NCBI RefSeq assembly: GCF_006345805.1
Contig: NC_043015.1
Span: forward strand, 19,344,001-19,408,000
Reading direction: 5' to 3'
DNA from: Octopus sinensis
Taxonomy: Eukaryota
DNA: 64,000 bases
In this document: positions 8,898 through 61,956 of the stretch, piece after piece
How the letters are laid out: every line of letters begins with the position of its first letter
How positions within the stretch are numbered: position 1 is the stretch's first letter
Translations under genes and position numbers: made by a program
Notes under the pieces: generated by a model
The model's input: the letters and a program-made list of their open reading frames with translations, nothing else
What the model was told of the DNA's origin: nothing
Databases searched by the model: none

Positions 8898-9149
8898 CTA
8901 CCTTCATTGTTATGCCGTCAGAGTGTACAAGAGAAGAAATGACTATTCAAGTTGTAAAGATGAAAGATATTTATGAAGAGACAATTGTGTCTCATTTAAA
9001 AAAAAATGGAAGAGTACATTATTCCCAGTGTGACAGTGTACTTACTATAATAGGGATTGATAGTTACCAGTTTGATCTTAGAATTGAATCACTTGACCTG
9101 CGACAACCTGATGATGGGATCTGCACTGATTCCTTGAAAATTTTCAATG
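8898..9149 (+). CDS. Exon A: N-terminal half of CUB domain ([13 protein letters not shown]...[11 protein letters not shown]...[10 protein letters not shown]...[11 protein letters not shown])
   Basis: Acceptor ttctttttgcag| at 8897 and donor G|gtaagt at 9150. Three Cys and the CUB-typical C-x-D-x-L-x-I-x-N-G motif. Confidence 0.88.
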
Positions 9150-12100: not shown

Positions 12101-13831
12101 AATTTTTTCAGTAGAATGGGCTTAAAAATCGTTTTTGATGACGATATGACGAAGGCCAACTTTTTAGATATTATGCTTAATTTACACAGCGACTCTTACT
12201 TCCCATATCGTAAACCGTTGACCAATCTTAAGTACATTAGCAAATTTAGTAATCATCCTAGAGCAATTACTAAGAATCTAGTTAAGAATATTTCATTTAG
12301 ATTATCTAAATTATCTGCTAATGTTGATATTTTCAATAATAATGCTGAATTCTATAACTCTGCCTTAATCAAAGCAGGTTATACAGAGAAATTGATAACA
12401 TAACTTGCTGAGACTGGTACTATTCCGTTTATTTCTATCCCTAAATGTTGAGTAATGGATAGAAATTCTTTTAGATAACTCTAACGATGTGCTTCCAATG
12501 TAAAATCGTACTTTATTACGAGTACTCATTATACACTGGTATATAGAATTTTTAATCTTAGAGTTACTTGACAAACTTAATTCTATTGGAATTGACTTCA
12601 GATACAATAACCTTGTTATTAATATTTCTAGAGGGTTGAATGGTATTAGCTAAATTAATGTTAGTATTAGTAAATGTATTAATATTTAACAGTTTGTTAT
12701 TATGAGAAGAGATAATTTGCGAGAGATTATTTACTTTTAGATCGATAATAGGGGATTAAATAAGGGTTATAAATTCACATAAGGTTAGGATAGGTTTTTC
12801 AAACACAAAAAATCTCTTGCAAATTATCTCTTCTCATAATAACAAACTGTTAAATATTAATACATTTACTAATACTAACTTTAATTTAGCTAATACCATT
12901 CAACCCTCTAGAAATATTAATAACAAGGTTATTGTATCTGAAGTCGATTCCAATAGAATTAAGTTTATGTCAAGTAACTCTAAGATTAAAAATTCTATAT
13001 ACCAGTGTATAATCAGTACTCGTAATAACGTACGATTTTACATTGGAAGCACATCGTTAGAGTTATCTAAAAGAATTTCTATCCATTACTCAACATTTAG
13101 GGATAGAAATAAATGGAAAAATACCGGTCTCAACAAACTGATTTGGTATTTAAAAGACCACAATAAACAATTTCATTTAGAATGGTTGATTCTCTCAATT
13201 TCGATACCATATGACAAAGGCAAGAAATTCTGTCTTCTCTGCAATTCTGAGCTATTTTCCATTATTTTTTCTAAAAATACTCTAGTAAACACGGTTATAG
13301 AGCGAGCATACAGATGTAAGCATTGGCAAAAACATACATTTAGTGCATATAAGTAGTCTCTATCATTATATATAATTTAAACTTTAATTTCCTTTATATT
13401 TAACATTCACTATTAATATCCCTGCTCTTTCTGTTAGCTACTTATGACGTTATATCATATAACGTTTTTTTAAACAATATTAATAGCGTTCTGTCTATCG
13501 CTGTACAAATCCATCATTTTTTGCTAAAATGTCTTATTGACGAGTTTCGTTTTTTTCACTTTCCTGATAAGATTGCATTGTTTATACCATTTATTCTTTT
13601 GAATAGTATCAGTGGAATTTTTGAAACATGTGTCGAAAGTAAAAATATTTGATTACACCTGCGTTAACTCCATTTTTTTATTCATATTATTCAAAATATT
13701 CAACGTAAACACGAAGTTTCTACCTTTATAAACAAGGAGTTACAACACCTTTACTTGTGAGATTTTTGCTGCCCTGATAACTATTTATTTATTTTTTCCG
13801 TGTTAATTGTTAACAAGGTAAAAATACACTC

Positions 13832-13873
<42 letters not shown>

Positions 13874-16800: not shown

Positions 16801-19800
16801 TGTCACTGTTGCCACTACATCATGTGTGTCACTTTGCAACAACACCCGCAATTTGTCGATCATCTCTCCTACTGACATTGTTTCAATGTCTGGGATCTGC
16901 TGCAGACGTAGAGAGATATGATCGGGGAAGCTGGTCGCAAAAGACAGCTTCACCATCCAATAAACCCTGCTATGCCACCGACCTCCTAATCTTACTCACA
17001 TAGTCGTCTTCACTATCCCAAGCTTGCTGTAGGTTTTAAAAGCCCCTCCATGCATGCATCTTTCAGCTGCTCTTCAGTTTTTTTCTGCTTTCTATTGGTC
17101 TGCTTCTTCCCTCTCCAAGTACAGATTCAGCACACTGCCTTCTAAGTACAATAGCATAAGGCTAGCCACATCTTCTATTCCCTGCACCTTCACCATGAGT
17201 CTCACTTTCTTTATCTAGGCCACTGCATCACCTTCCCCAGTGAACGGTCTCAACACATCACTACCAATTCTGATTTTTGTGGCTATTGCAAAAAAAAAAA
17301 AATGAAGAAGAATAAGAGCAACATAAAAAATTTAAAAATCTAGTTCACCGACATAACCTCATAGTTGGTAACATTTTGCCAGAATAGCTTATGGTTTAAA
17401 GGTACAAAAATAGAGTTGCTCTTACTTTAACTTGCAATCAGCTACTGCCAGCAGATCATTCAGTTATTATTACATATTGACATGACCGATCTCTTCACAC
17501 CACATCTGGCCTCTGTCACTGACAGCATAAAGAAGAGGGTGACTTTCCTTGTCGCTCACCAGTGTGACGTCATCTTATCCCTTCCAGTCTTCCTGCACCA
17601 TCTCTCCCCCTCCCTTCTGGTCAGTTACATTTCCATCACAATTATGTATATATGTTTACACTAGGTATTTTATTCATGAGCTGTAACTCTCTTCCAGTTT
17701 GTATATTTATATTTGTCACAGGTTGTATATTTATATTTGTCCACAAGTTTCATTTGTAAATTTGTCTGCTTTATACTCTTTATGAACTGAGCAACCGGTA
17801 TTTGTCATATAAGCATACAGACATACACAGTTTTTGAGATGAGTGTGAGATTAGCAATTCTGTCAAAATATTACTACAATATTACTAAATGATTTAATGA
17901 GAATCAAATTAACATATTTACTACAAATTTTTGCTTAATACTTTTTGTTTTATGAAAAAGGTCCACGAGTTGACAATGCTAACATCCTTACTCCAATGGA
18001 AGGACTTTGTGGCAGTTCATTGCCTTTAGAAACATCATTTAAAACCAGTCGTAACTATTTGACTGTTCGTTTCAAAATTGAAAGTTCAAGTAATGAGAAA
18101 CGCGAAGGATTTTCTATCAAAATTTGGCAGCATGAATGGAAAAGTCCTGTCAACTCTCAACGTGGAGGATTTAATCCTGGTGGTAGGTTCAAATATTTTC
18201 TTTTATTTTCTGTTTATTTAATATTGTCATTCAAAGATAGCCTATTCTGTAGAGAATCAGGTTTGTATTTGTGGTGCTAAAAAATCAATTACGGCAGTAA
18301 AAACAGATATGATCATAGAAATTCTAGCATATATATTGAAGTGCTGGCCAATGGTAAGTGCAAAGGAATAGTAGATGTATCTTAAAATTGAGAGTGCCAA
18401 GTATTGTAAAGTTAATGCAAATGGTAATGTACAATAGAGTTGCTGTGATCATAGTGAGATTAATAAATAATAAAACTCTTGCATATATAATTTTTTGAAG
18501 CACTTTGCTGAGAATGTTATCTACAATATATTACTGTTCTGTCTGAGAAATGTTTTTCATATATTCAACACTATGCAAAATCAGAGGTATGAAAACAGTG
18601 AGAAGTACAGATCTTGTAGAAGGCTCTGAAAGCATCAGTGAGGAATGTTCACATTGTTTCCTCACTTAGATAATATAGAATGAGGTTATCTTTTTATCAT
18701 ACACTTAGCTGTCTTTACATCAAAGCTAGTATTGAAAGTAAAAATATTTCAATATACAGAAGCATGAATGGTTTCTTTTGTTTTTACACCATTTGGTGAT
18801 AAATACAGAGGGACATCTGCTTTCTATTTCAAAATTGGAGGTGTCAAGTATTGCATTGTAAATGTAAATAATGAGTATACAAAAGGGGTGGTATGATCAA
18901 AATGAGGCTAATATAGACTCAGAACTCTGGGAGCATTAGAGTTCTTTGCTATATTCTACTGATTACTGTTCTCTCCAGAAAGACTTTTTTTTTCTGTTAC
19001 ATACTTAACATTGTAGAAACCAAATTCAGGCACTCTTGTGGAATACAGACTACTGACACTGTAGACTAGCATCCTAGTGACAACTACAGGCTTATCCTCT
19101 AGATTTGTATATGCTAATATTTATCAATAAAATTGTTATTCTTAGTTAAATATATAGAGTCACTTATGTCAATCTGAGTTTCAGTTAGCTTACAGACATC
19201 ACACATTGTTCATAATCTGCACAGCAGTATAACACATGCTACATTTAAACCTTATAAACCCAAATAATTTATTAATATTTGTGAAAGCAGTAGCAAGTGC
19301 TGTAGAATACATGTTAGCTCATACCAAGGCAAATACATAGCATGGTTTTAATAACACTACAGCTTATTTCCTGACACTTATAAATGTGTAAATATTTCAA
19401 ATTCTCCTTTACCCTTCATTAACATCTTTTGTGTCTACACAAGTAATGCTTAAAGGTCCATTGAAGAGTCAGAAATTTAGAGAAGTACTAAGTGAAACAT
19501 TTGACAAGATGGTAGAAGAGATAGCAACATTTAGCATAGATGACATTTGGAAGTTCTTTCAGTCAACTTGCTGAAAAAACTGCGAGAAAGGAGCCAACAG
19601 AGAACTATAACAGGTAACTGAGACAGGAAGTTAGGTGACCATCATGTTGTGCAGGAAGGTAAAGGAGACGCCTTAGGGAGAAGTAATAGCATAGGCAACA
19701 AATTACTGGAAGTCAAGAAAATTGTTTCACAATGGCAGCAACAGAGAGTAAGAAGTTTGTCAACATTCTACAGTGGCAGGATCAGCTGGTGTTGGTGTGT

Positions 19801-22110: not shown

Positions 22111-22193
<83 letters not shown>

Positions 22194-27681: not shown

Positions 27682-27732
<51 letters not shown>

Positions 27733-29369
27733 AAACATACACACATCACAGCTAAGCTAAAAAAATTTCTTGTTTTAATTGCTTCATGCATTCATTCATG
27801 TAACCCATAATACTAACATGTACTATTCCCTAAAACCTTAGTTCTCTCTCCCTGTTTCATAATGTTTACATCATCGTTCTCTAGTAAACCAGCCATGTGT
27901 ATTTTCTCTCATTTTAGTTGCTTCGTTCATTCATCTAACCCATAATACTAACATGTGCTATTCCCTAAAACATTAGTTTTCTTTCCCTGTCCCTAAAACA
28001 TTAGTTTTCTCTCCCTGTTTCCATCATTGTTCTCTAGTAAAAATGGCCATTGCTTATATATATATAAAATACTAGCAGAGATACCCGGCGTTGCCCATGT
28101 TACATGCAATTGAAGAATTAGACTTTTCTGTTATATTTTCTGTAATGAACTGGAATATCTATGTTTTGAATTTCATCTAAATTGCAGATGAGGGTTATTT
28201 CCCTCTTTACACACCCTAAAAAAATTGTAATCATGCCACATGCATCCCATACTACTGATTTTTATGTGCATATTCCAAAATCCAGTCTTATTGAACCTGA
28301 AAAATGAAGGTCATGGAGCACTAAAATGTGAGAGTTAAGGATCCTGTTGGGGATGGGTGTCTTAATGTCAAGCAGAGAAGTTGGATTGTTGAGAATCTTT
28401 TTAACTTGGGTCTTATATCTATTGTTTGAATTTTTTGAAATAGGAAACATATGTTCACTAGGTTTGTAAAAGAGAGCAAAGCTACAGGAAACCAAAAGAC
28501 GAATGATCACAATAAGCAGTCAGCTACCCTACCCTAGTCGTTACCACTCCCAATGTAGGATTCCTCACCAAGCAGGTGACAGGCACAGCCGTAAGATGCA
28601 TTATGAATCTATAGCAATTGGAAGGGCATGACCCAACTCAAATAAACATTAACAACTGTGTGACATGAGGGCTAAGGAGAAATGAAAGTGTCACCTCTGG
28701 AGTTTGCAAATGACCACTATACTGATACATAACTGGACAGAATAAATTTACAATCTATAAATGTCTTTGAAATCAATCAATATTACCATCTGGGGACTAT
28801 GTGTGACCCAATGATAATAAAAAGACTGAAAGGAAGTCTGCAATCAAATAACTTTACTCAACACTTTGCAACTGAATCAGTGGAGGCAAAGATGCCTCTC
28901 ACTTACTTGACAATTTATGCACCACGCTAGCATGGAAAGCGGACGCTAAATGATGATGATGATTGCAGAAATCACAATGTAAGTGTATGTCAAAGCAAAG
29001 TGTTACACTGTTGTACCATTGAATTACAAATAATGCTCATCTTTTATGCTCAGGTAACCCTACAGCTTCCAAGAGTACAACTGTATTCGTCTTTGCTTAG
29101 ATAAAATCACAAAATTGTGGGTGTTATGTCCCTATGGAGGGGTCTTTCTATCTTGTAAGATGAAATATTATAAATATTACTTCATTTGTGTCTACTATGT
29201 ATGGTTAAAATTTCATCAACAGCAAAAATATATGAATTGTCATGGGGGTTATGGCCCTTATGCATAGAATATAATTTCATAAAGATCCATTCAGTACTTT
29301 TGACCTAGTTTTGGATCATATAAGAAATGACTAAAATTTGGGAGTTAAGGCCCCCATTAGGGTGTTTTG

Positions 29370-29409
<40 letters not shown>

Positions 29410-30234: not shown

Positions 30235-30267
<33 letters not shown>

Positions 30268-30282
30268 AGCTATATGTATACA

Positions 30283-30322
<40 letters not shown>

Positions 30323-33300: not shown

Positions 33301-33413
33301 ACAGAAATGACTAAGAAAGCCCGAATTGGCATCTATAAGGGAAGTAACTCTCAAAAAATGCTTATATAGTTATTTCCCTTACAAACCCGAGCAACGCCGG
33401 GCGATACTGCTAG

Positions 33414-33444
<31 letters not shown>

Positions 33445-48400: not shown

Positions 48401-51400
48401 CAGCGTGCATGCGCAGAATGGGACTACTTCCGGGTGGCCACCGGAAGTCTTCCCCATGCGCATGTGCAGGAAACTGACCCCTAAGGCACAGTCCACTCAC
48501 TCACTCTCTCTGGCCCCAACAGCACTCGTGAACAGACGTGCATTAGAAGTCTCTGAGAACTATGCATCGACTTAGCAGTGGACACATCGAACCACTTCGA
48601 CCAGCCTACAAGAAGCAGTACAACAGATACGGCTGTCGGTCCCCCTCAGAAATAGGCACACCAGATCAACACCATCACAAGTAATAAAACAACATTTGCT
48701 GTCTTTCTCAGATAACCTGACTTCGTCTGTTATATTTAACTAAATTGAATGTGACGGAATCGGATCGGACACCCCTTCAGTGATACCGATTCCAGATCCT
48801 GTTATAATTGGTGACCCCGAGTAAAAAAAAAAAAAAAGAAAGAACAGAAGACGCAGCGAACAGGTTTTGCCAGTTAGCACGCTGAAAACTCAGTTTTCAC
48901 TTTCATTTTTTCGTACAAACAAAAGTTTATCCATCGCACTCAGTACACTGAAAAAAAAAAAACACACACACACATCATTTTTTCTTTTCTGTAGCCTTTG
49001 TTTTTCCTTTGTGTGCACACACACACACCTATTCTTTACTACCCACGAGGTGCACACACACACACACACACACACGAGTACACAAAACACGTTTTTTTTT
49101 TATTTGCTTTGTCGGTTTCACGTGTTCTCCACTTCTCGTTCTTCCTTCTGCCCCCTTTCTGACAGGCGTTTTTTCGGACAAACATGGCTGCATCAGGTTT
49201 GCCTTTATTCACAGGGGATGCAGGTCTGTGGTTTGCCCAGGTGGAGTCGCATTTTGACGCACATGCCGTTCCTCCACAGCAGCAGTTGCATCTGCTATAT
49301 TCAAGTTTGCATCCCCGACTCGCCACATCGGTCAGGGATCTCATAATAAGTCCCCACCCGGACGCCACATACGTGTCCGTAAGAGCCGAAATCCTCCACC
49401 GCAACATGCGGTCGGAGGAGAGTAATTTTAAGGAGCTGATGGCTGAGGAACAGTTGGGATACAGGACTCCATCCCAGTTCCTGTGCCACCTAAGGGAGCT
49501 GAGCGGGAACGCAGCAGACGCGCCGCTCTTACGGAGGATTTTCTTCTCCAGGTTGCCTGCCCACATGCAGACAATGTTGGCCACGGCACTGGAGTCTGTG
49601 TCAGTAGACCAGATTGCCACGATGGCAGACAAAATATTGGAATTTCCGAAACCATCTCCATCGCGAGGCCTGTGCGCATGTACAGAGCCCCCTCCGACAG
49701 TTTCTCCGATGCATAATTCATTAGCCGAGCGGCTCGCTGCGCTCACACGGCGAATTGATGATCTGTGCCATGCGATCGGGCGTCGACCACACAGTTGTAG
49801 TCGCAGTGGCTCTGCTGAAAAGGCAGAACGGTGTACCCAGCCGTGCACTTTTCAGCTCTCGGGAAACTAAATCCGGAGGAGGTGAGCACGTCACCTTCTT
49901 CCGTCTCGTTTCCCAAAAATCGTGCGTTCTTTGTAAAAGATCTGGTGTCGAAGAAATTCTTCATGGTGGACACCGGCTCTTGTTGCAGCATCTGGCCCCT
50001 TTGTCTGATTGCAGACAAGCCCAAGCACTCTTCAATTGTCTTGCATGCCATTGACTCGTCTCCTATAACCACCTTCGGTCAGATTTCGCTGCGCCTCGAC
50101 ATCAACCTTCGTCGAGATTTTCAATGGGTTTTCGTCATCGCTGACATCCTGCATCCTATTCTCGGCGCTGATTTCTTGGATAGGTTTAATCTATTGGTGG
50201 ATGTCAGGCGTCGGAGGCTTCTTGACAGCACGACGTCACTCTCATCGCTCACTGGGAGTTCCACCGATGCGGTCCTTAGCCCGACATTCTTTGTTGCCAC
50301 CTCTGGAGACGCTTTTCACTCTCTTTTGGCTTCGTTTCCGGAGCTAGTGGACATTGCCTTTCAACCAGAAAAGCCTACCCACTTGACCCTCCATTTTATC
50401 ACCACCACTGGGCCGCCTGTATTTTCGCGCCCACGGCGCCTTGCGCCTGACCAACTAAAAGCGGCTAGGGCCGAGTTTGAGCACATGCTTCAACTTGGCC
50501 TTATACGCCCCTCCACCAGCCCATGGGCGTCTCCCCTTCATTTAGCGTGAAAGGACGAGTCTGATTTTCGCCCGGTAGGAGACTATCGACGCCTCAATGC
50601 CGTAACAATAGCCGACAAGTATCCAATCAGAATTCTACAGGACTTTACGGCAAATCTCCATGGTTGCACCATTTTTTCGAAGGTCGACCTTATACACGCG
50701 TACCATCAAATACCGGTCAACCCAGCTGATGTTCCAAAAACTGCAATCACTACCCCTTTTGGGTGTTTTGAGTTTTTGTATTGAGTTTCGGTTTGCGGAA
50801 TGCTACCAGCACTTTCCAGCGTTTCATTGATGAGGTTGTCCGCGGTCTTGATTTTGTGTTTGCCTATGTCGATGATATACTCATTGCGAGCGACACACAT
50901 GAAAATCATCTCCAGCACCTTTCTCGGCTTTTTCAGCATCTTCGCGCTTATAGTATACGTATAAATCCCGACAAGTGTGTTTTCGGACGCTCTTCTCTAG
51001 ATTTTCTTGATTTTTTTGATTGATTCGAGTGGAATCAGCCCTCTGTCATCAAAGGTCGATGCCATTCAACACATCGCACCTCCCACTTTCTTGCGCCAGC
51101 TCAGGCATTATCTAGGGATGATCAATTTCTACTGACGTTTTATTCCCGGTTGTGCAGATAAGCTACTTCCTCTCACCAGGCTATTAAAGGACACTCCTAG
51201 AAAGGACGGTCAAGTTACCCTCTGTTGAGGCACTGACAGCCTTTGAGTTCATTAAGGAGCTGGCTTCTGTTTCTTTGCTTGCACATCCGGTTCCTGGTGC
51301 TTCTCTCTCTTTGACTGTAGACGCATCGGACACTACGATTGGCACTATGTTACAACACACAGTGGATAATCATATTCGACCTCTGGCTTTCTTTTCCCGC

Positions 51401-53766
51401 CAACTGCAACCAGCTGAACGACGATACAGCACCTTTGATCGTGAGCTCCTAGCGATCTATCTATCTGTTCGTCATTTCCAGCATCAACTTGAAGGGCGAG
51501 ATTTTGTGATCTATACGGATCACAAGCCCCTTACGTTTGCCCTGTGTTCAAAAACGGACAAACTCTTGCCTCGTGCTTTCCGGCACCTGGATTTTATCTC
51601 TCAATTCACTAGTAACATTCGACACATACCTGGAAAGGAGAACGTTCCTGCTGACGCTCTCTCTCGCCTTCCAGTCTGCGCCCTTTCGTCTCCTGCTGCT
51701 ATCGACTTAACTGCCATCTCGCAGGAGCAGCCACCTTTGGCGTCGTTAGATTTAACTTCTCCCAAGTTCTCTTGTTGCCAGTTTTCCTACCTTCCGTTTC
51801 CGTCAGCCGAAGGCACCATTCTTTGTGATACTTCCACTGGTTCTCCCAGGCCACTCGTGCCTGAGAATCATCAACGCTCAGTGTTTGAAGTACTGCACTC
51901 CTTATCACATCCTGGCATCGCTGCCACCCTTAAGCTCGGTTTTTCTGGCTGAATATGTGTCCCACTATTACTTCTTGGACACGCACCTGCTCCAAGTGTC
52001 AACAGTCCAAGATTCAACGGCACGTTCGTGCCCCGCTTGGACATTTTCCCCCTACGGAGGGCCGTTTTTGCCATGTCCACATCGATCTGGTTTTCTTATC
52101 TGTTAACTTGTGTCGATCGTTTCTCCCGCTGGCCAGAAGCCATTCCAATAGCAGACATTTCTGCTGAGACTGTTGCGCGAGCCTTCGTTTCGAACTGGAT
52201 TTCCCGTTTCGGAGTTCCGTCCAGATTGACTACTGATCATGGACGTCAGTTTGAAGCTTCGCTATTTCGCGAATTGTCGCGCATTTTAGGTGTGCATCAT
52301 ATTCGCACTACCAGCTATCATCCAGCGTCTAATGGATTAGTTGAACGGTTCCATAGACAGCTCAAGGCCGCTCTTCGTGCCTCCTCGGATCCACAGTCCT
52401 GGATTGAGTTTCTGCCCATTGTGCTTCTCGGTTGTCGCACTGCTGTCAAGGCAGACCTGGGGTTTTCTTCTGCAGAGCTACTGTATGGTACCACACTGGC
52501 ATTGCCTGGTACGATGTTGGTGCCAGACACTTCCCAGCCCCATGATCCGGCGACCTATGTCGCCAGACTGCGTTCCTATTTTTCGAATCTTCCACCCATG
52601 GTTCCCAGGAAACAATCTCCACCATTCCATCTCCCACCGGATATGGACACTTGGTCGCATGTTTTTGTTCGGGACGACTCTGTCAAGGGACCACTTGTTT
52701 CTCCCTTTAAAGGACCTTTCCTTGTGCTTTCTCGCACACCTAAGGTTTTCACCATTGAAATAAATGGTCATTCGGAGACCGTTTCCATGGACCGACTGAA
52801 GAAAGCATACTTTGAGATGTCTTCATCTTTTGATGACAACCTTGCCTCACCCACCTATGCACCTTTAACAACACCTTCACCTGCACAGACACCTTTGCCT
52901 TCACCGGCTCCCACAACACCACCTTCGCCGTCAACGGGTGCCCTGAGCACACCGTATATTACAAGATCGGGCAGAACAGTGCATTGGCCCAAGAAACTTT
53001 CAAAGACAATTTATATTTAACTTTCTTTCTTTCAAATTTCTTGTTTTTAGTATCATATTGTGTACCAAATCTTCTGGGGGATCGGCAAGCCATCTGTTTT
53101 TCTGCAGCACCACTACAAATTTTCTTGTTTTCGTACTTCCACACTCGAGGGGGAGCCATGTAGTGATGCTACTGTGTAAGGTTCAGCGCGCATGCACAGA
53201 ATGGGACTACTTCCGGGTGGCCACCGGAAGTCTTCCCCATGCACATGTGCGGGAAACTGACCCCCTAAGGCACAGTCCACTCACTCACTCTTTCTGGTCC
53301 CAACAGCGCTCGTGAACAGACGTGCATTAGAAGTTTCTGAGAACTACGCATCGACTTAGCAGCGGACACATCGAACCACTTCGACCAGCCTACAAGAAGC
53401 AGCACAACAGATACGGCTGTCGGTCCCCCTCAGAAATAGGCACACCAGATCAACACCATCACGAGTAATAAAACAACATTTGCTGTCTTTCCCAGATAAC
53501 CTGACTTCGTCTGTTATATTTAACTAAATTGAATGTGGTGGGATCGGATCGGACACCCCTTCAGTGATACCGATTCCAGATCCTGTTACAGGGGCATGTG
53601 GGTATATGTGCATATAAAAGGGATGTGGATTTGTGTGGCCTGGCATGGTTAGTGTGGTGCTTATGCATTCTGTATGCATGCAAACATGTATATGTACATG
53701 CACATTCACATTCATACACATGCATGCACCCACACACACATGAACACAGAGACATATTCACCCGCA

Positions 53767-53827
<61 letters not shown>

Positions 53828-56800
53828 GAATGTGTGTATCATTGGCCATGTAAGGGGGTGGGGCATGCATGTTTATGTACGGGGTGGTGTGCATGCACAT
53901 GGATGCTTCTGTGTGTCCATATGTGGTTACTATTGCATGTGTGCCTCATATATAGGGACTGCACATGCAACAGCAAGCACATGAACACACACAAGCATCC
54001 TTGGCCAACCACAGCCCATCTACCAGCAGCCATCTTAGACTTCTTGCACCTCCCTATTTGTTCAGATTTCCACCAGCATAAGGCCCTGATTAGAGGCTTT
54101 AAAAGTTTAAAAAGCATGGAATTGGAATCAAATTGTTTTGTTCAATACATGTAGCTCCCAATTAATGTGTTGAGTGCCCTTTCTTTGTCCACTTACATGT
54201 ATATATATTATCTATATATTTCTTTATCATGTAAACATAGTTCCGATAGCTTCGTCTTCCTTGTTTGTCTTAAGATCATGCATATCTGTTAATCGTTATA
54301 TTTTATTTCTATTTTATTCAAGGTTATCATTTCATTATTTCATTCTCTCTAAATTTATTTAACCATTGTTTACAAGTGCAGAAGACGATGCTCTAGTCTA
54401 AACTTGCTGTTTCGCCCTCGCACCCCCTCCACCTTTAACCGGAAGTTACTAACCTATGTCTTCCTTCTCTACCTCCCGCGAACACTTCTAAGGGCCAAAT
54501 GCTACCTACACCCCTATGTAGGGTTCATTTGATCATTTAGCGCATAAAAATGGTGTAGTGTATGTAGATTGTAGTCTAGTGTTTCTTTATGAATTCTGCC
54601 AAATGCAAGCTTTCTTTTCAGGTACATGACACTGCTGTCCCTCATCCCAGGGTCTCACAGGCCCACACCTCCCACACCCTCAGAGTTGGCACACTCAACG
54701 TTGGCACACTGAAAGGTAGGTCTGGTGAGATTGTTGAGATGCTTGAACGGAGACATGTAGATTTGTGCTGCATCCAAGAAGTAAGGTGGAGAGGAGGTTC
54801 CGCTAAGTTCCTTACAGGCAAAGAACACAGGTACAAGATTTTCTGGGCAGGGAGCACTGATGGGGTCAGGGGCGTGGGTATATTTCTTGCGGAGAAATGG
54901 GTTGATAAGGTAATCGAGATAGTCAGAGTATGTGACAGAGTACTTAAGATTAGATTAGTGCTTCACCATAGGTCAGCTACCATTATCTCGGCCTATGCCC
55001 CTCAACCGGGGCTACAAGAGGTGCAGAAAGACCGATTCTATGACACCCTATTGCAGACTACTTCGTTGACAAATGACAGAGACCTTCAATGGACATGTTG
55101 GTCAACATGTCGGGGGCTTCCATGGCATACATAGAGGCTATGGTTTTGGTTTTCGCAATGAGGAGGGAACCAGGCCGCTGGAGTTTTGCGATGGAAATGG
55201 TTTGCAATACCAACTTCAGGAAACCCGCCTCCCACCTAGTCACCTACCGTTCTGGCAAACACACTAGCCAAATTGACTACATCCTCACCAGAAAAAAGGA
55301 AAGAGGGCTGCTTATAAATGCCAAAACATTCCTAGGTGAAGAATGTACCCCTCAACATAGATTAGTAGTTAGCGACTTCGGGATCAGAGCTAAGTGGATG
55401 CCCAGAAGAAGACCAGCTTGAAGGAGAAGGGTCTGGAAGCTTAAAGATCCTGCAAATGGACAGAGATTTAGAGACGTATTACTCGAAGCCTTCGTTGAAA
55501 TAGAAGGGGATATAGCTTCACATAATGTGGAAGACAACTGGAGGTTTCTACAGAACAACCTGCTGAGAGCCACTGACCAGATCTGTGGATGGTGCAAAGT
55601 CCCATCTCGACCCAATGTGGTGGTGGAACAATGTGGTTGACAGGGCTATTAAACAAAAGAAACAGGCTTGGAGGGGCTGGAAGAATGGAGGTAGCAGGGA
55701 ATTGTATCAGACTGCCAGAAGAGAAGCTAGGAGACAGGTTTATTTAGCCAGAGGGGAAGCAGATAAGAAAAAATTTGCCAATGTTCTGCGCTGTGAGGAC
55801 CAAAGACTTGAAGTATTTCGTGTTGCAAGACAGTGTGTGAGAGAGAATCGTGATGTCATAGGAGAGAATGTGTCCGTATGGATGATGTTTCACTTGCACT
55901 AAATGAGGCTACAAAGAGAGAGGTTTGGAGACGCCACTATGAAAGGTTGCTCAATAAAGAGAATGAATGGGAGAAAGAGTGTCTGCCGAATGTTGACCCA
56001 ACAGAGGGACCAGCTATCTGAATTGACAGTACCTTGGTAGATAAAGCAATCAAGAGTATGAAGACAGGGAAAGCCCCCAGCCCATCAGGAATCACTGCAG
56101 AGTTGCTAAAAATATCTGGCAATGTCGGCTATAGCCTAGTCACCCATATAGTTAACCAAGTGATACACGTAGGAGTCATACCCAATGACCGGGCGTTGTC
56201 AGTGTTTATTGAGCGAAAACACCTAAAGCTCTACGAGGCTCCGGCAGGGGATGGTGGTGATCCCTGCTGTACTCTTTCACCACAACTTTCTCTCACTCTT
56301 ACTTCCTGTTTCTGTTGTACCTGTATTTCAAAGGGCCGGCCTTGTCACTCTCTGTGTCACGCTGAATATCCCCGAAAACTGCGTTAAGGGTACACGTGTC
56401 TGTGTAGTGCTCAGCCACTTACACGTTAATTTCACGAGCAAGCTGTTCCGTTAATTCGGATCAACCGGAACCCTCGTCGTCGTAACCGACGGAGTGCTTC
56501 CATCCATACCCAATGACTGGTGTAGCAGCACCATAGTTAACTGCTACAAAAGTAAAGGTGACGCCTTAGATACAAATAATTACAGAAGTATCAAGCTGCT
56601 GGGTCAAGTAATAAAGGTCACGGAGAGGGTCATAGCCCAATCAATTAGAGAGAGAGTCAGTTTAGATGAGATGCAGTTTGGGTTCGTGCCAGGGAAAAGT
56701 ACCACTGATGCTATATTCCTGGTAAGACAGCTTCAGGAGAAATACCTAGCCAAAGATAAACCTCTGTACCTAGCTTTCGTTGACATGGAGAAAGCCTTTG

Positions 56801-59800
56801 ACAGAGTCACCCAATCCCTTATCTGGTGGTCAATGAGGAAACTAGGGATAGATGAATGGCTAGTGAGAGCTGTGCGAGCCATGTACAGGGACGCTGTAAG
56901 TCAGGTGAGGGTTGGCAACAAGTACAGTGAAGAATTCCGGGTAGAGGTAGGGGTCCACCAAGGTTCAGTCCTCAGCCCCCTCCTATTTATCATAGTTCTC
57001 CAGGCAATAACAGATGTACCCAGTGTAAGCTATGGACACATAAGAGGTGCAGCAATGTCAAAGGAAGGCTAACTAGGAAGATAGTTTTTGTATGTGGCAG
57101 ATGCTCAGGAGCAATAAACACTGAAAATGTGCAGAGAACAACTTCCGTCACTTTCCAGGGAGAAAAACTAGAAGTAGTTGATAGCTTCCGTTACCTAGGT
57201 GACCAAGTCAGTAGCGGGAGCAGGTGTGCTGAATGTGTAACTGCTAGAGTAAGAATAGCCTGGGCAAAGTTCAGAGAGCTCTTACCTCTGCTGGTGAGAA
57301 AAGGCCTCTCGCTCAGAGTAAAAGGTAGATTGTATGACGCATGTGTACGAACAGCCATGCTACATGGCAGTGAAACATGGGCTGTGACTGTTGAGGACAT
57401 GTGTAAGCTCACAAGGAATGAAGCCAGTATGATCCGATGGATGTGTAATGTCAGTGTGCATACTCGGCAGAGTGTAAGTACCTCGAGAGAAAAGTTGGAC
57501 CTAAGAAGCATCAATTGTAGGGTGCTAGAGAGACGTTTGCGCTGGTATGGTCATGTGGCGAGAATGGATGAAGATAGGTGTGTGAAAAAGTGCCATACCC
57601 TAGCGGTTGAGGGAACCTGTGGAAGAGGTAGATCCAGGAAGACCTGGGACGAGGTGGTGAAGCACGACCTTCAAACTTTAGGTCTCACCGAGGAGATGAC
57701 TAGAGACTGAGACCTTTGGAAATATGCTGTGCGTGAGAAGACCCGGCAGGACAAGTGAGACCATAACCCGTGGCCTTTACATGGGATGTAGCCAGTCCAT
57801 TTATGCATACCTTTCCTCCTTGGGACACAAAACTCTACTTGTGAAGACCTGTTGAGGCAAGCGAAATCGAAATCAATCAAAAATTCAATGGAAATTGTAG
57901 TTGTGATACCATTGCCAGTGGCACGTAAAAAGATCCATCCGAACATGGCTGTTGCCAGTGCCGCCTCGACTGGCTTCCGTGCCGGTGGCACGTAAAAAGC
58001 ACCAACCAATCATGGCCGTTTCCAGCCTTGCCTGTAACTTAAAAAGCACCCACTACACTCATGGAGTGGTTGGCGTTAGGAAGGGCATCCAGCTGTAGAA
58101 ACACTGCCAGATCAGACTGGAGCCTGGTGCAGCCTCCTAGCTTCCCAGACCCCAGTTGAACCGTCCAACCCATGCTAGCATGGAAAACGGATGTTAAACG
58201 ATGATGATGATATATATATATAATTTTTTTTTGTAATGAGATATAAAAAACCAAGGCTGTGTAGATTTTAGAACATTTACACAGCCTTGGTGTTTTATCT
58301 CATTACGGGAAAAAAAAATTTTTATATACACACGCTGTTATATGACCTATGTTGAACCCCTTATTTGCATAATCACTGAACCTGGAACTTAACGATGGTC
58401 TATCTATAGCACTTATTCAGCTTACCTGACACCTTTGGGTCTCAATGACACCATTACCTCTCATAACCCCTATATATATATATATATATATATATGACAG
58501 GCTTCTTTCAGTTTTGATCTACCAAAGCTACTCACAATGCTTTGGTTGGCCCAAGGCTATAGTAGAAAATGTCATGCAGTGGGATTGAACCCACAATCAT
58601 GTGATTGGGAAGCAAGCTTCTTACCACACAGCTACACCTGCACCTATAAATATATGAATCATCTAATCTAATCTATGTTGAATTAGCTTCTTTTCAACTG
58701 TAAAGAAATTATTAACATTGGTAGCGTTTTTTATCTGGAAATCTTTTTCACACTTCCTGTGGCCCCTTTAGCAACTCTCCATCCCACATATCTCCTCCTG
58801 TTCGTTTTTTCCCCCTTTTTTTAAATATCATAAAAACATTTAGAATGAGGCAATGTTTCATTCACCAATATTTAACATTATGCAGTTGACATTGCATGAA
58901 CTGTATACTACAGGTTTTGTCAGCAACTGATTACAATGTTGTTTTTTTTCTAAATTTTTAATCTTTTGTACTTTCTGTCTATACCAAGTTTTATTCATTC
59001 CATTTTCTGATTTACATTAGTTGTTTCTACAATTATGCATATCCTTTTATTCAATAGCTGAGGACCCTACTGAACTGATTGTTCTTTAAACATTAGGCAG
59101 AGCCATGTTGAGAAAACTTTAAAATGAGGTTTAAATCTATGAGCTCTGGCTTCTTAGATTCATTGGTTAGTTGGTCAGTTGAACAATTGAGGAAGACATT
59201 GGATTTATTGTCCACTCATAACTTCTCTCTCTAATTTTGTTTTATTCTCTCATCTGCATGGTGAGCTTGTGCATGAGTATTCTGCTTGTGTAGCAGCAGA
59301 AGTCATGAAGTTTCCAACTGTCATTTGTAGCTTGTTTCCAGGTTCACATACTTATGGTTTGGTGTTCAATAGTTGATTTTTTTTTTTATATTCAAGTGTT
59401 TTTGTAGTTTATGATTAGTTTTGCATTTTGTGTTATCTTTTTATGAGAGTCTTGATGTGCTCATCTTTTCTATTGTTGTGCATTTGATTTATATAGTATA
59501 ATTTATATATGATTTGTGTGTGTATAATGTTTATAATGTCTGGTGTATTGTATTAATACTTACATTCTGCTTTTCTGTATGAATGCTTAATTCATAAAAA
59601 CCAACTTATTCTCTCTGTTGAATTACTCTCAAAGCAAGGAAGCATTATAACTTGTCAGAGTTTGTTCCAGTATATGTTCCAGTTATAACTTGTCAGAGTT
59701 TGTTCCAGTATACATTCTTTACTTGTTTTCATATTTCTATTTTCTCCTTTAATTAGGTGTTCTCAATAATGCTGTTATTGTCTTTATAGTTGATATTTGA

Positions 59801-61956
59801 TGAAGTTTGATACTATTGTTTACATATGTGGTACCTAGAGTGATATAAATTTATCTGATATTCTGACATCTTTTCCATAGATATTTCCTATGCTTTTTGA
59901 TGACAGGAAACAGTTGAAGCCCTTTTGAGCATAAGACTTTTGCAATATCTAGTTCTAATTCAGGAATTATAGGACAATATTTGGCACAGTGCAGTAGGGT
60001 CCACTTGGGACAGTTGCATAACTTTTCTATGTCACACATGGTCAGTATCCTTCCAAGCTCTTTTAAGTATTATTGCCTGGTGTTATTTTCTGTTTCTCTC
60101 TTTTACACTACAATAAATAGAGTCTTAAAGTATCAGTCATTCCCTGTAGTTTGGTTAGTACATAGAATTAATCTTTGTTGTATAAGATTATTGAATAATT
60201 TTCAATTAAATGATGGACTTGGTATGAAACTGCTCTTTTGTTCTAAATGCTATCAGGATCCACCTAGTTAGTTATCTACACAATTCTGCTGGTTTTAAAG
60301 TAATAAGAAAATGATAATTTCCAAGTTTGGCAAAAATTCTGACTGAGGTTTCAATCTCTACTGGACCCAGTGTATCTAGTCTGCAATGTGTCAGAGGGTT
60401 AATAGCAAAGCACTTGAAACTTTTCAACATTTAATTACATGCTTTTTTTGTTCAACTCTCCTATTTATGTCATTCTGGTATCATGGGACTCTTAAATGTC
60501 TTTGAAATTTATTGTATCAGTAACATAGCTATTTAAGATAGATGTACTGTTATCTGAATTTGCAAGATATTTTACAATTGTAATGGATCCAAAACACTTC
60601 TTTAGGACATGTTACACTGGATTGCTGTTATTTTGAAAAGTAATCATAGATCACGACAACTTCATTTCTGTCTTTTAGAATATTGTGTACAACTGCTCTC
60701 ATAATTTTACATTTCAGCTGGAGTCATTTAGTTTCTAGTATATTATCTTATAATCAATTTTGATGAAGCCTTTGCGAAGTCCAGAGATACCACATCTACA
60801 TTTGACTAGTTAAGTAGCTGTTTTAATATTCAGTGCAATGATACTACAGCTATGTATGGCAGTTTCTAACTGAACAGAAATTGAGTTGAGTGCCACTTTA
60901 CAAATCATTAAATTATTCTCTTATTATGAATTTGTAATTCTTAGCATTTACTCTTTCTTCTTCCATTAAAGAAAACACACACACAGACACTTTTTTTTTT
61001 CTTTGGGAGCTTTTTATTCACAGGAAACTTGGGCCACTTTCTTTTGCAAAGTTCTGATATTAATAAAGTCAACTGGTTCTGTCATTTACATGTTATTTGC
61101 AGTATAAAGGAAAAAACTTCATCATTCAGTACTTTGCTTGCCTTCCTACAAGATGTACTAAGTGACCTATTTCTGTCAGACAATGGCCTTTGTATCCTTT
61201 CATTTTGTGGAAAATTTTATTTCATTTTAAATTTCCATGTGATTTTTTAAAATGTTTTTCTTTTCCTTATAGAGAGATATATATTTAATTTATTTGAGAT
61301 ATTTTGTTCTTCAGCAATCTTTAGAGATATTTTTATGAACTCTGCTCTCGTTTCATAGGTAAAGAATTATACCTATGTTATTAAGTTGTAAAGAACTTCT
61401 AATATTCAATAATAGTGGTATGTGGAATAACAAGTTTAGGTTTCTATGTTTATTTGTAGTGGCTAAGCATGTTTTTGTGAATAGTTTTGGAGTCACACCA
61501 ACTGTTGTATTATTTGTTGTGCTTTCTTTTCTTTTTCTACCAGTTTACCTTTGGGGAAGCAATTTATTTGCTTAATCCTTTTCAGTTGGGTGTATTTACT
61601 TTTTGAAACATGTTTAGCAGCAGTTCATTTCCCTTTTTTCATGTTTGTAAGTGCCTTTTAAATTATACTTTTAACACTTTTGCTGTGAATGGGTACATGT
61701 GAAAAAAATACACACACACATGCATACATAGTATCTGTTTTTAAGTTCATTTATTCTTTTACTTTTAGACCCATCAATTAATCTGGATGACCCTGTAACA
61801 CCAGGAAAACTTCTAGGATGCCATCTTTACAGCAACCCATATGGAGTTAAAATCAACTATTGCTTTTGTGAGGAAAATCGTTGTAATAGTTCCAGAAGAA
61901 ATTTACCATTTAATTTATTATTGTTGACATATATTTTACTTGTACTTCATCTGTGA
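8898..61956 (+). CDS. Multi-exon host gene (5 coding exons found, 5' signal-peptide exon not found): CUB domain + linker + Ly6/uPAR (quiver-like) domain + GPI signal, about 317 aa
   Basis: Exons of 252, 222, 222, 69 and 188 nt all have pyrimidine-tract AG acceptors, and the first four have GT donors. All junctions are phase 1 and the joined frame has no stop until TGA at 61954-61956. Confidence 0.8.
9760..11545 (+). mobile_element. Degenerate RTE-clade LINE (APE endonuclease to start of RT)
   Basis: [59 protein letters not shown] and [15 protein letters not shown], with many frameshifts. Confidence 0.9.
11554..11735 (+). mobile_element. PLE pLTR-like segment starting with a 73-nt hairpin and containing a G3:C8 hammerhead variant (11600-11651)
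   Basis: Inverted repeat 11554-11585 / 11596-11626. Core GTGAACA, stem II GTC(AT)/(GC)GAC, GAAA, palindrome AATATT. Confidence 0.65.
11789..13830 (+). mobile_element. 5'-truncated Penelope-like retroelement (RT with YRDD, C-terminal GIY-YIG) with an internal inversion
   Basis: [41 protein letters not shown]; then SIYQCII...FYIGST...FCLLC. 12411-12770 is an inverted copy of about 12810-13135. Confidence 0.9.
13558..13640 (+). ncRNA. Degenerate type I hammerhead motif at the PLE 3' end
   Basis: Perfect stem I ACTTTC/GAAAGT, core CTGATAA (G8 changed to A), long imperfect stem II, then GAAA-CATGTG-TC. Confidence 0.6.
13891..13965 (-). mobile_element. RTE LINE/SINE 3' tail fragment
   Basis: (CAT)n-cgtttagcgtccgctttccatgctagcatggg is the reverse complement of the RTE tail at 58160-58211. 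Confidence 0.85.
14390..14970. repeat. Palindromic (foldback) non-coding element
   Basis: caatcactggtc...gatgtgaagtggttcccaatgcaaatatatatat (14517-14570) is inverted at 14845-14898. Confidence 0.65.
15180..15930 (+). mobile_element. LINE ORF1-like (nucleic-acid-binding/zinc-knuckle) remnant
   Basis: Frameshifted ORFs 15318-15566 and 15472-15840, followed by [10 protein letters not shown] (first half of a CCHC knuckle). Confidence 0.55.
15960..17640 (-). mobile_element. Heavily deleted Gypsy LTR retrotransposon (LTR, gag, integrase start)
   Basis: Minus-strand gag [38 protein letters not shown]; integrase CNWCQSID...EDWKRLAID; LTR-like segment about 17290-17640. Confidence 0.75.
17961..18182 (+). 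CDS. Exon B: C-terminal half of CUB domain (GPRVD...GLCGSSLP...[30 protein letters not shown]...)
   Basis: Acceptor aaaaag| at 17960 and donor G|gtaggt at 18183. LCG, S-x-N-x-L-T-V-R-F and GF-x-I CUB motifs, in frame with exon A. Confidence 0.88.
19450..19745 (+). mobile_element. Old RTE LINE remnant
   Basis: gtaaaggagacgccttagggagaagtaatagc...aaattactgga resembles the KGDALDxxNYRxIKLL-coding segment of the RTE copies. Confidence 0.45.
19830..19941 (+). mobile_element. SINE 3' part
   Basis: Matches the SINE 3' half at 38730-38860. Confidence 0.65.
19942..20745 (-). mobile_element. Mariner (DD34D) transposase remnant, 3' half with terminal repeat
   Basis: ORF 20012-20476 has [24 protein letters not shown] and [16 protein letters not shown]. 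Confidence 0.95.
20872..22100 (-). mobile_element. PLE terminal structure: two tandem pLTR-like copies around an ORF start plus one inverted copy, embedded in (TA)n
   Basis: 20872-21240 and 21450-21830 are direct repeats and 21860-22100 is inverted. The spacer encodes (-) [21 protein letters not shown], resembling a PLE ORF start. Confidence 0.65.
22517..26395 (-). mobile_element. Degenerate Gypsy LTR retrotransposon (gag-PR-RT-IN) with two LTRs
   Basis: LTRs at 22517-22827 (TGTGG...CCACA) and about 26146-26395. gag [13 protein letters not shown]; [30 protein letters not shown]; integrase [24 protein letters not shown]. Confidence 0.92.
26675..27088. mobile_element. 414-bp MITE, same family as 2006-3820
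   Basis: TIR GGATCTTTTCGGTTTGAGCGGCAG / CTGCCGTTCAAACCGAAAAGATCC. 8-bp TSD CTGGTAGG at 26667-26674 and 27089-27096. Confidence 0.93.
27785..28045. repeat. Local tandem duplication (about 135-bp unit) with an internal 24-bp duplication
   Basis: cattcattcat-taacccataatactaacatgt-ctattccctaaaac occurs twice. Confidence 0.8.
28072..30741 (-). mobile_element. Non-autonomous Helitron (ends seen; interior contains other insertions)
   Basis: Minus-strand 5' end A^TCTATATATATAAAAC at 30741. 3' hairpin (GGGCAACGCCGGG) then CTAG^T at 28072. Pairing the two ends into one element is inferred. Confidence 0.6.
29410..30045 (-). mobile_element. tRNA-derived SINE with an internal tandem duplication of about 270 bp
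   Basis: 29410-29660 and 29665-29918 are direct repeats. The tRNA-like head is at about 29960-30040 (-). Confidence 0.8.
31080..31700. repeat. AT-rich degenerate tandem repeat (period about 140-185 bp)
   Basis: taggaattaaccttat-ata recurs near 31201, 31338, 31480 and 31665. Confidence 0.7.
31760..32190 (-). mobile_element. PLE GIY-YIG endonuclease fragment
   Basis: CNC...[14 protein letters not shown]...[15 protein letters not shown]...LSKSIWNLK. Confidence 0.85.
32408..33413 (+). mobile_element. Two head-to-tail non-autonomous Helitron copies (32408-32902 and 32903-33413)
   Basis: 5' TCTATATATATAAAG. Each copy ends with the hairpin CCCGAGCAACGCCGGG followed by CTAG^T. Confidence 0.85.
33463..33670. 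repeat. Two small hairpin elements (33463-33533 and 33554-33670)
   Basis: 14-bp and 19-bp perfect inverted cores. The second resembles 46400-46480. Confidence 0.7.
34358..36137 (+). mobile_element. PLE fragment (GIY-YIG) flanked by inverted pLTRs, each with a hammerhead motif
   Basis: 34358-34560 is the reverse complement of about 35895-36137. [18 protein letters not shown]...KYIGSAG...YNHRSSF...LSSHVWHLK. Central hairpin at 34940-35044. Confidence 0.85.
34373..34432 (-). ncRNA. Type I hammerhead motif with intact core
   Basis: AGAGT-CTGATGA-[stem II]-GAAA-CCATTGG-TC-ACTCT: perfect stem I and a GUC triplet, but the stem II left arm is eroded. Confidence 0.7.
36182..36302. repeat. Perfect 40-bp inverted repeat with a 41-nt spacer
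   Basis: ggttgcagaacaaacaaatataaggtcatccacgtaacat (36182-36221) and its exact reverse complement (36263-36302). Confidence 0.9.
36818..37039 (+). CDS. Exon C: linker + start of Ly6/uPAR domain ([14 protein letters not shown]...[38 protein letters not shown])
   Basis: Acceptor atttcag| at 36817 and donor T|gtaagt at 37040. Open 74-codon frame with CxxCxxC and CxxC. Confidence 0.85.
37255..38860 (+). mobile_element. tRNA-derived SINE split at its (TA)n tract by the 37429-38636 insertion
   Basis: Head at 37255-37428 (tggctgtggtaag...gggttcagttccac). The 3' half resumes at about 38655. Confidence 0.85.
37429..38636. mobile_element. Non-coding foldback of PLE pLTR-like units with hammerhead motifs at 37699-37771 (-) and 38300-38373 (+)
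   Basis: Arms about 37430-37790 and 38250-38636 are inverted, and 37965-38210 is an internal direct repeat. Cores CTGAAGA and CTGATGA, GAAA, stem III palindrome ACAATTGT. Confidence 0.75.
40445..40640 (+). mobile_element. Second copy of the 6577-6770 repeat with a damaged hammerhead-like motif (40523-40558)
   Basis: CTTT-CTGTCAA-A-GAGT-GTAA-GCTC-AAAA-CGTA-AAAG. Confidence 0.65.
40690..42270 (+). mobile_element. Old degenerate PLE (RT + GIY-YIG)
   Basis: [12 protein letters not shown]...[47 protein letters not shown]...FKARLNNHK. Confidence 0.85.
42560..43892 (+). mobile_element. 5'-truncated RTE LINE (RT C-terminus, 3' UTR, (GAT)n tail)
   Basis: [28 protein letters not shown]; tail tgttaaac...(gat)n. 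Confidence 0.9.
43915..44990 (+). mobile_element. Internally deleted RTE LINE RT fragment
   Basis: [41 protein letters not shown]. The segment expected to encode YADD is missing. Confidence 0.85.
45020..45190 (+). mobile_element. SINE 3' half
   Basis: Matches 38655-38830. Confidence 0.75.
45964..46032 (+). CDS. Exon D: middle of Ly6/uPAR domain ([23 protein letters not shown])
   Basis: Acceptor tttctctttgtatag| and donor AAAG|gtaagc. 69 nt, phase 1-1. The R-T-C-Y motif supplies the sixth LU cysteine. Confidence 0.82.
46999..47915. mobile_element. Degenerate PLE fragment (thumb/linker/GIY-YIG) with an inverted segment
   Basis: [30 protein letters not shown] on +. About 47140-47218 is the reverse complement of about 47830-47915. 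Confidence 0.7.
48376..53590 (+). mobile_element. Near-complete but defective Gypsy LTR retrotransposon, CsRn1/Kabuki-like
   Basis: LTRs at 48376-48806 and 53159-53590, TSD GGGG, PBS TGGTGACCCCGA (tRNA-Trp type), PPT GAGGGGGAG. gag 49184-49870; protease VDTGS; RT YVDD; RNase H VDAS...DRELLA; integrase [15 protein letters not shown]. Stops and frameshifts in pol. Confidence 0.97.
49861..49901 (+). promoter_or_regulatory. Putative -1 ribosomal frameshift signal (gag-pol)
   Basis: Slippery heptamer G GGA AAC (49861-49867), a 7-nt spacer and an 11-bp stem with a 5-nt loop (49875-49901). pol is in the -1 frame. Confidence 0.75.
54470..58211 (+). mobile_element. Near-full-length defective RTE LINE (APE + RT), interrupted by a SINE and an internal deletion
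   Basis: ATG at 54589; [57 protein letters not shown]; (GAT)n tail. The YADD region is deleted near 57013. The 5' boundary is approximate. Confidence 0.95.
56190..56504 (+). mobile_element. 315-bp SINE (apparently 5'-truncated) inserted in the RTE
   Basis: 13-bp TSD CATACCCAATGAC at 56177-56189 and 56505-56517. Confidence 0.88.
58495..58650 (-). mobile_element. tRNA-derived SINE head
   Basis: Reverse complement of the head at 37255-37410. Confidence 0.8.
59800..60900 (-). mobile_element. Very old CR1-like LINE RT remnant
   Basis: Minus-strand [12 protein letters not shown] (cf. CR1 VDxxYLDFxKAFD) and [10 protein letters not shown]. Boundaries uncertain. Confidence 0.45.
61769..61956 (+). 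CDS. Exon E (last): [62 protein letters not shown]
   Basis: Acceptor attcttttacttttag|. C-x-C-x4-C-N LU terminus followed by NSS, a short spacer and a hydrophobic tail (GPI-signal pattern). ATTAAA at 62041-62046. Confidence 0.9.

Follow-up and report, generated by a model that had tools for sequence, protein, structure and literature searches.

Domains of the Ly6/uPAR (LU) type are coded by symmetric sets of exons bounded by phase-1 introns and are rarely joined to other modules (PMC6600238). The same review argues that the LU domain is not truly mobile, almost never being joined to other folded modules, and lists GPIHBP1, SP-10 and the TGF-beta receptors as the few exceptions known, with unrelated sequence attached to an LU domain (PMC6600238). 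Here, we analysed a window of 64,000 nucleotides (the whole stretch of DNA under study: Octopus sinensis, contig NC_043015.1, positions 19,344,001 to 19,408,000 of the forward strand) that contains the gene LOC115222183. With a probability of about 0.7, we read it as one octopus gene for a surface protein that is held by a glycosylphosphatidylinositol (GPI) anchor, consists of a CUB domain, a linker and an LU domain, and acts by binding. Two familiar modules and a conserved linker would thus form an apparently undescribed, mollusc-wide domain architecture, in a gene already annotated as uncharacterised.

The closest described systems resemble this protein in different ways. Quiver/Sleepless and the other insect GPI-anchored Ly6 proteins (Pfam QVR, PF17064) have the same single ten-cysteine LU domain, ending in C-x-C-x4-C-N and followed by small residues and a GPI-type tail; however, the members of the Quiver/Sleepless family, of ~150 amino acids (aa), consist of the LU domain alone, whereas the octopus protein adds a CUB domain and a conserved linker of 48 aa in front of it. 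The octopus LU domain also starts with a tighter cysteine spacing (CxxCxxC), all matches to QVR are sub-threshold, and no orthology with Quiver/Sleepless was detectable. Neto1/2, SOL-1/SOL-2 and LEV-10 likewise expose an extracellular CUB domain on a membrane-tethered protein that is not an enzyme, and Neto2 is among the structural matches of the octopus CUB domain, but these proteins are transmembrane, carry at least two CUB domains plus an LDLa module, and have neither an LU domain nor a GPI anchor. Outside its own family, the nearest sequence relatives of the octopus CUB domain are multi-CUB proteins and transmembrane proteins with a single CUB domain and an LDLa module. On the LU side, uPAR, C4.4A, TEX101 and CD59/Lynx are GPI-anchored three-finger proteins, as the octopus protein probably is, and also have LU exons flanked by phase-1 introns (PMC6600238); uPAR, CD59 and Lynx2 appear in our list of structural matches; the multidomain vertebrate members (uPAR, C4.4A and TEX101) differ in being made of LU repeats alone, with no CUB domain. 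GPIHBP1 is also GPI-anchored, with an LU domain adjacent to the membrane, but the partner of the LU domain in GPIHBP1, SP-10 and the TGF-beta receptors is an acidic disordered stretch, a repeat region or a kinase, and not a second folded extracellular module.

One gene for the CUB and LU parts

The Octopus vulgaris/sinensis gene LOC115222183 comprises six coding exons on the + strand, over a coding span from 679 to 61956 (61 kb). Coding exon 1 (679-742, +) provides the ATG and the signal peptide MLIKKTCQLFMLAIGFFTFLQ, corresponding to aa 1-21 and the first base of Ala22, and ends at the donor G|GTGCGT (742/743); a tblastn search with a 264-aa product annotated in O. vulgaris aligns at 679-753. 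Exon 2 (8898-9149, +), lying between the acceptor ttttgcag|CT and the donor ATG|gtaagt, supplies aa 22-106, which complete the signal peptide and form the N-terminal half of the CUB domain (C31, C66 and C97), and exon 3 (17961-18182, +) supplies the C-terminal half of that domain (C122) and the start of the linker, ending in GGFNPG-G (aa 106-180). The linker continues in exon 4 (36818-37039, +; aa 180-254), which also holds the first five LU cysteines (CxxCxxC ... CxxC). The short exon 5 (45964-46032, +; 69 nucleotides, 23 residues) contributes the sixth LU cysteine (C262) and a predicted helix, and exon 6 (61769-61956, +) the last four (C294 and those of CFCEENRCN), followed by a GPI-type signal of 22 residues (61888-61953) and the TGA stop codon (61954-61956). 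All five introns are in phase 1, with lengths of 8.2, 8.8, 18.6, 8.9 and 15.7 kb, and scripted joining of the six exons gave a product of 1017 nucleotides, i.e. 338 codons plus TGA.

A previous reading of the window from its letters alone (the sequence-only reading) had proposed exons 2 to 6, there called A to E, spliced in one phase. Direct reading and recomputed splicing confirmed all five at the same positions, with AG...GT borders and a polypyrimidine tract before each acceptor. Exon 5 (D), for which a blind search on splice sites and phase yielded an excess of false candidates, was found by tblastn of homologues. The same reading had also placed the start of the gene at 8898 and given it five exons and 53 kb, thereby overlooking the signal-peptide exon at 679-742. 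Nor is the gene hidden, as had been claimed, since it is annotated and its protein is present in RefSeq and GenBank: the 338-aa product is residue-for-residue identical to XP_029648188.1 (O. sinensis, “uncharacterized protein LOC115222183”) and to CAI9736462.1 (O. vulgaris, “Hypothetical predicted protein”). The O. bimaculoides orthologue LOC106878819 is 94-95% identical, exon 3 included, and this exon alone reaches 98.7% identity by tblastn. Searched with independent proteins from other species, the exons were recovered by tblastn with expectation values (E) of 1e-28 to 1e-53. The pattern of exons and cysteines is far beyond chance, and the gene model and the CUB domain, estimated jointly, can be taken as close to certain.

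The 18.6-kb gap between exons 3 and 4 (18182-36818) raises the alternative of two adjacent genes, one CUB and one Ly6, misjoined across it. Intron 3 is indeed long and rich in transposon remains, and the 264-aa O. vulgaris product treats exon 3 differently, as such a misjoining might lead one to expect. On the other side, the orthologous open reading frame (ORF) of a cephalopod (350 aa), holding CUB, linker and LU together, is unbroken on 11 intron-free Logan contigs of 1.3-1.5 kb from separate sequencing runs, which must represent transcripts because the introns of the gene are so large; the orthologous ORF is also present on a Logan contig of 4.6 kb. The junction 18182/36818, which the sequence-only reading had set as its test in joining exon B to exon C, splits one Gly codon inside the motif NPGG|WNDG, kept in all 13 of the aligned species, and is therefore supported both by this straddling motif and by the transcript contigs of the other cephalopod. 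Exon 3 is followed by no stop codon and no anchor signal, exon 4 is preceded by no start codon and no signal peptide, the same architecture recurs in ~15 mollusc species, and even in the 264-aa product, exon 2, of the CUB domain, is joined to the exons of the LU domain. Two misjoined genes, already contradicted by the transcript contigs, the split motif and the shared architecture, are thus extremely improbable: the CUB and LU parts belong to one gene and are carried by a single mRNA. Single-exon fragments from many other assemblies cover positions 107-182 and 182-255 of the family profile; the exon borders are therefore conserved and old, which lends the junction further support.

Two further observations concern the transcripts of this family. 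The second product of the O. vulgaris annotation (264 aa) is identical to the other exons and skips the in-frame exon 3 of 222 nucleotides (17961-18182); this skipping would delete the C-terminal half of the CUB domain, and may be either a real isoform or an annotation artefact. On a Logan contig of run SRR29271477 (1-4516), an orthologous ORF of 344 aa lies right after a coatomer-beta ORF of 981 aa, probably as a result of chimeric assembly rather than as a true bicistronic RNA.

Domains, linker and predicted anchor across the family

Homologues with 29-95% identity were recovered from octopus to oysters and limpets, and the named full-length ones all belong to molluscs. They include cephalopods (three Octopus species, Argonauta and Acanthosepion/Sepia), bivalves (Pinctada, Crassostrea, Tegillarca, Mytilus, Mizuhopecten and Mercenaria) and gastropods (Gigantopelta, Haliotis, Patella and Plakobranchus), and UniRef names the orthologues “CUB domain-containing protein”. 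Beyond the family, its profile finds the CUB part only: 42 mid-length matches read by eye were CUB-LDLa-transmembrane, multi-CUB or CUB-only proteins, none of them with an LU domain, and those non-family matches that are named by source include proteins of Lingula (brachiopod) and Convolutriloba (acoel). A search with a profile of the LU part alone recovered nothing but fragments of the family itself, of one exon each, with no free-standing Ly6 protein among them. None of the database names found describes the CUB-LU combination, and the literature searched, outside subscription journals, yielded nothing relevant on it, on the locus identifiers of the family or on the sequencing runs, in line with the sequence-only reading, to which this architecture was unfamiliar from characterised proteins.

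The CUB domain (8925-18136, +; aa 31-164) is coded by exons 2 and 3 and holds the four cysteines that the sequence-only reading had counted (C31, C66, C97 and C122). C97 and C122 are invariant across the family, C31 is nearly so, and the second cysteine is present in every member but shifted in the alignment. Pfam CUB (PF00431) matches 9 of the 13 orthologues (best E 2.9e-9), and the family profile, searched against 1.84 billion representative proteins, revealed many matches to multi-CUB proteins, reaching E 2.5e-24 and with up to 10 matched stretches per protein; searched full-length against the sequences of the PDB, it gave a weak cubilin match only (E 0.007). We also used a whole-protein AlphaFold (AF2) model, built on the O. 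bimaculoides orthologue (95% identical) with an alignment of 13 sequences, in which the predicted local distance difference test (pLDDT) of the CUB part (residues 10-138 of the O. bimaculoides protein) is mostly 70-84. Comparison of this part with the PDB by Foldseek retrieved the CUB domains of TSG-6, PCPE-1, neuropilins and C1r/C1s/MASP, with E from 2e-7 to 1e-5. For single-domain entries, the target template-modelling (TM) scores were 0.75-0.79, with TSG-6 CUB_C at 0.75 (E 2.2e-7) and C1r CUB2, neuropilin-1 a1 and MASP-1 CUB2 at 0.78-0.79, and Neto2 occurred at ranks 43 and 47, below TSG-6, PCPE-1 and neuropilin. The octopus CUB domain is divergent in sequence yet clearly homologous to the CUB family, and the domain claimed by the sequence-only reading is borne out by the family profile, the Pfam matches of the orthologues and the structural matches.

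Reading of the alignment also indicated that the bivalve and gastropod members carry acidic residues (LD[LIV]D and F.TD) at about aa 88-92 and 143-147 (numbering of the protein in the window), where cephalopods have R/Q/P and G/E. These positions are presumably the calcium-ligand sites of calcium-binding CUB domains, and calcium binding may have been lost in the cephalopod members. Some of the nearest CUB relatives outside the family (P0146, P0113 and P0077) are short proteins with one CUB domain and a hydrophobic C-terminal end, without LDLa or LU; these may be GPI-anchored proteins with CUB as their sole domain, perhaps similar to the ancestor from which the CUB half derives.

The QVR-like LU domain (36937-61887, +; aa 220-316) is coded by exons 4, 5 and 6, a set bounded by phase-1 introns as described for LU domains (PMC6600238). 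Recomputed from the spliced protein, its ten cysteines (C220, C223, C226, C244, C247, C262, C294, C308, C310 and C315) follow exactly the claimed pattern CxxCxxC, CxxC, C, C, CxCx4CN, and all ten are shared without exception by 15 sequences that represent three mollusc classes, as is the Asn that follows C315. When the LU segment was searched alone, 11 of the 15 members matched the Pfam family QVR (“Quiver family u-PAR/Ly-6-like domain”; best E 9.7e-4), and the individual matches shown span essentially the whole profile of 86 positions. Other weak Pfam matches were to Activin_recp (4/15) and to UPAR_LY6 (1/15, E 1.9), both of them three-finger families. An AF2 model of the LU part alone (pLDDT 75.8, predicted TM score 0.69) contains beta-hairpins and one helix (model residues 54-63, in exon 5), and about 30 of its best 50 Foldseek matches are three-finger structures, with the ectodomains of the TGF-beta type II receptor (TbRII) and BMPR-IA at the top, along with uPAR, CD59, Lynx2 (rank 45), Prod1 and snake toxins. 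Alignment of the LU profile by hhalign with human CD59 was confined to the last ten residues (the CxCxxxxCN end), at a probability of 1%. We consider an LU fold for aa 220-316 probable, and its sequence suggests that it is closest to the invertebrate Quiver (QVR) subtype.

Between the two domains, the linker (aa 165-212, +, coded by 18137-18182 and 36818-36915) has as its core NPGG|WNDG..FQ..W..Q..PG, a motif interrupted by the 18.6-kb intron 3. Ten of its 48 columns are invariant in 13 mollusc proteins, and its mean top-residue frequency is 0.67, compared with 0.54 for the CUB domain and 0.56 for the LU domain. Its conservation equals that of the best-kept parts of either domain, and it is the sole element without a known counterpart; in Pfam, no family matches it. 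At the C-terminus, the protein ends with N316-S-S, the spacer RRNLPFN and a hydrophobic end of 13 residues, i.e. the NSS, spacer and GPI-type tail of the sequence-only reading. The same layout occurs in 15 of the 16 homologues, which end 23-29 residues past CN with two small residues, a polar spacer, a hydrophobic end of 12-17 residues and no charged tail, making GPI anchoring likely.

Several results weigh against this picture of the protein. The octopus protein and its parts gave no CUB match in Pfam at E<=10, returning only noise (Cas6_N, PH_met_RdRP), and the octopus LU segment itself matched neither QVR nor UPAR_LY6 at E<=10; both domains emerged solely by way of orthologues and profiles. 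All QVR matches of the family fall below threshold (best 20.5 bits for a gathering cut-off of 27.3), the LU profile finds no three-finger protein among the PDB sequences, and the Foldseek matches of the LU part are weak (best E 0.097, TM 0.4-0.54). In the whole-protein model, pLDDT is <50 over much of the LU part and 27-44 over most of the linker. The signal peptide and the GPI signal were judged by sequence rules and conservation alone, and one Mytilus model carries, past the hydrophobic stretch, a charged extension of 25 residues that resembles a transmembrane anchor. The function of the CUB-LU protein, finally, is purely inferred. As for the LU domain of the sequence-only reading, its ten-cysteine pattern and its resemblance, below threshold, to QVR stood, but not the firmness with which it was put, as the octopus segment has no Pfam match and the fold comparison reaches an E of ~0.1.

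Transposon remains in the introns

The window is AT-rich metazoan DNA, with a GC content of 0.23-0.54, and the large introns of LOC115222183 are filled with transposon remains. An ORF derived from a transposon was rejected, the exons all lying outside the detected remains, and a pseudogene was rejected because conservation and the intact frames speak against it.

Two elements lie in intron 5. A retrotransposon with long terminal repeats (LTR) extends from 48376 to 53561 (+), between direct repeats (48376-48777 and 53159-53561) that are 96% identical and 4784 nucleotides apart. Its parts, all on the + strand, are a gag-like DUF7041 region (49184-49870), a reverse transcriptase (50551-50781), an RNase H (51188-51949) and an integrase (51953-53017); as these domains occupy different frames, the element is frameshifted. 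It is followed by a non-LTR element of the LINE (long interspersed nuclear element) type at 54580-57710 (+), spread over several frames, with an endonuclease at 54580-55131 and a reverse transcriptase at 56455-57069. Decayed peptides in intron 4 (42400-44900) closely resemble the 3' part of this element. In intron 3, a remnant of a mariner-type transposase lies at 20012-20476 (-; Transposase_1, E 1.8e-18), and a GC-rich stretch (0.46-0.54) at 22859-24889 (-) carries what is left of another LTR-type element, with integrase and DUF7047 sequences. Lastly, an ORF of 179 aa in intron 2 (12817-13356, +) has a weak, sub-threshold GIY-YIG match (E 0.007) and may be a Penelope-like remnant.

Possible roles and origin of the CUB-LU protein

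In the reading that we favour, the 338-aa secretory-pathway product would enter the endoplasmic reticulum through its N-terminal signal peptide, and its C-terminal ~22 residues would be exchanged for a GPI anchor near N316/S317. The LU domain would then sit beside the outer leaflet of the membrane, with the CUB domain held distally on the conserved linker. With neither an enzymatic nor a cytoplasmic part, the protein would have to work through binding, most probably by assisting a transmembrane receptor or channel of the same cell, as accessory subunit or co-receptor, or by capturing an extracellular ligand. A binding or accessory-subunit role in this general sense is somewhat favoured. The uniform phase 1 of the introns suggests, as the most likely origin of the CUB-LU fusion, that exons of two class 1-1 modules were shuffled together early in mollusc history.

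More specific roles can be drawn by analogy from the proteins that the two modules resemble. Boudin, Crooked and Coiled, which are GPI-anchored Ly6 proteins of Drosophila, are needed for the assembly of septate junctions, and the octopus protein could in a similar way be a factor of epithelial junctions, barriers or adhesion, its CUB domain providing a second binding surface. The shared LU domain of QVR type and the shared layout of the GPI signal would suit such a role, as would the retention of the family in all three large mollusc classes, whatever the complexity of the nervous system, which fits a general epithelial function. Coiled is reported to be required for septate junctions and for the blood-brain barrier (PMC3058042). 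The Drosophila Ly6 proteins, however, have no CUB domain, and no orthology to them was detected in the profile searches, leaving a junctional role as a possible but unlikely one.

The octopus protein could also be an auxiliary subunit of an ion channel or ionotropic receptor, with an LU part acting as Lynx1 and Sleepless do on nicotinic receptors and Shaker-type channels, and a CUB part acting as in Neto, SOL-1 and LEV-10. Binding of QVR/SSS to Shaker-type channels and nicotinic receptors is documented (PMC4735452), and the best, albeit sub-threshold, Pfam family of the LU domain is QVR, that of Quiver/Sleepless. Lynx2 and Neto2 are both among the structural matches, and a GPI anchor on a protein without a catalytic part would fit a modulator acting in cis. 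Against this, the QVR family also takes in insect Ly6 proteins whose roles include junctional ones, a breadth that would deprive a QVR match of functional specificity; the CUB model is nearer to the CUB domains of TSG-6, PCPE-1, neuropilin and complement proteins than to Neto2; and no studied homologue was found in the literature searched. A channel-subunit role is therefore a conjecture that we hold to be rather improbable, and nothing here favours it over other roles at surface receptors. A further version, in which a mollusc-specific GPI-anchored auxiliary subunit would unite a CUB domain of the Neto/LEV-10 type with an LU domain of the Lynx/Sleepless type and use the NPGGWNDG linker as a third functional element, is a long shot; in it, the linker could set the geometry between the domains or itself be a binding site.

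The structural matches also point to co-receptors for growth factors or morphogens (TGF-beta/BMP, Wnt), in which the LU domain would work as the ectodomain of a TGF-beta-family receptor or as Lypd6, and the CUB domain as in neuropilin, PCPE-1 or Tolloid. The TGF-beta type II receptor and BMPR-IA ectodomains head the LU matches, Activin_recp is weakly matched by 4 of the 15 members, and PCPE-1 and the neuropilins are among the top CUB matches. Yet these are weak matches throughout (E 0.1-5), owed to the common three-finger fold rather than to a specific relationship, and Pfam prefers QVR to Activin_recp, with 11 members against 4 and better E-values; a morphogen co-receptor is accordingly given little credence here. 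The probability left over by these three specific roles goes to a binding role of some other kind.

The significance of the favoured reading, a GPI-anchored CUB-linker-LU surface protein, is limited in that CUB and LU domains are widespread components of extracellular proteins, annotation already covers the gene, and no pathway is yet tied to it. Nonetheless, a CUB-LU fusion kept across cephalopods, bivalves and gastropods runs counter to the view of the LU domain as a module almost never joined to other folded ones (PMC6600238), and its mollusc-wide conservation argues for a function under selection. As a candidate for a mollusc-specific co-receptor or accessory subunit at the cell surface, the CUB-LU protein is well defined and tractable, and its linker suits mutagenesis.

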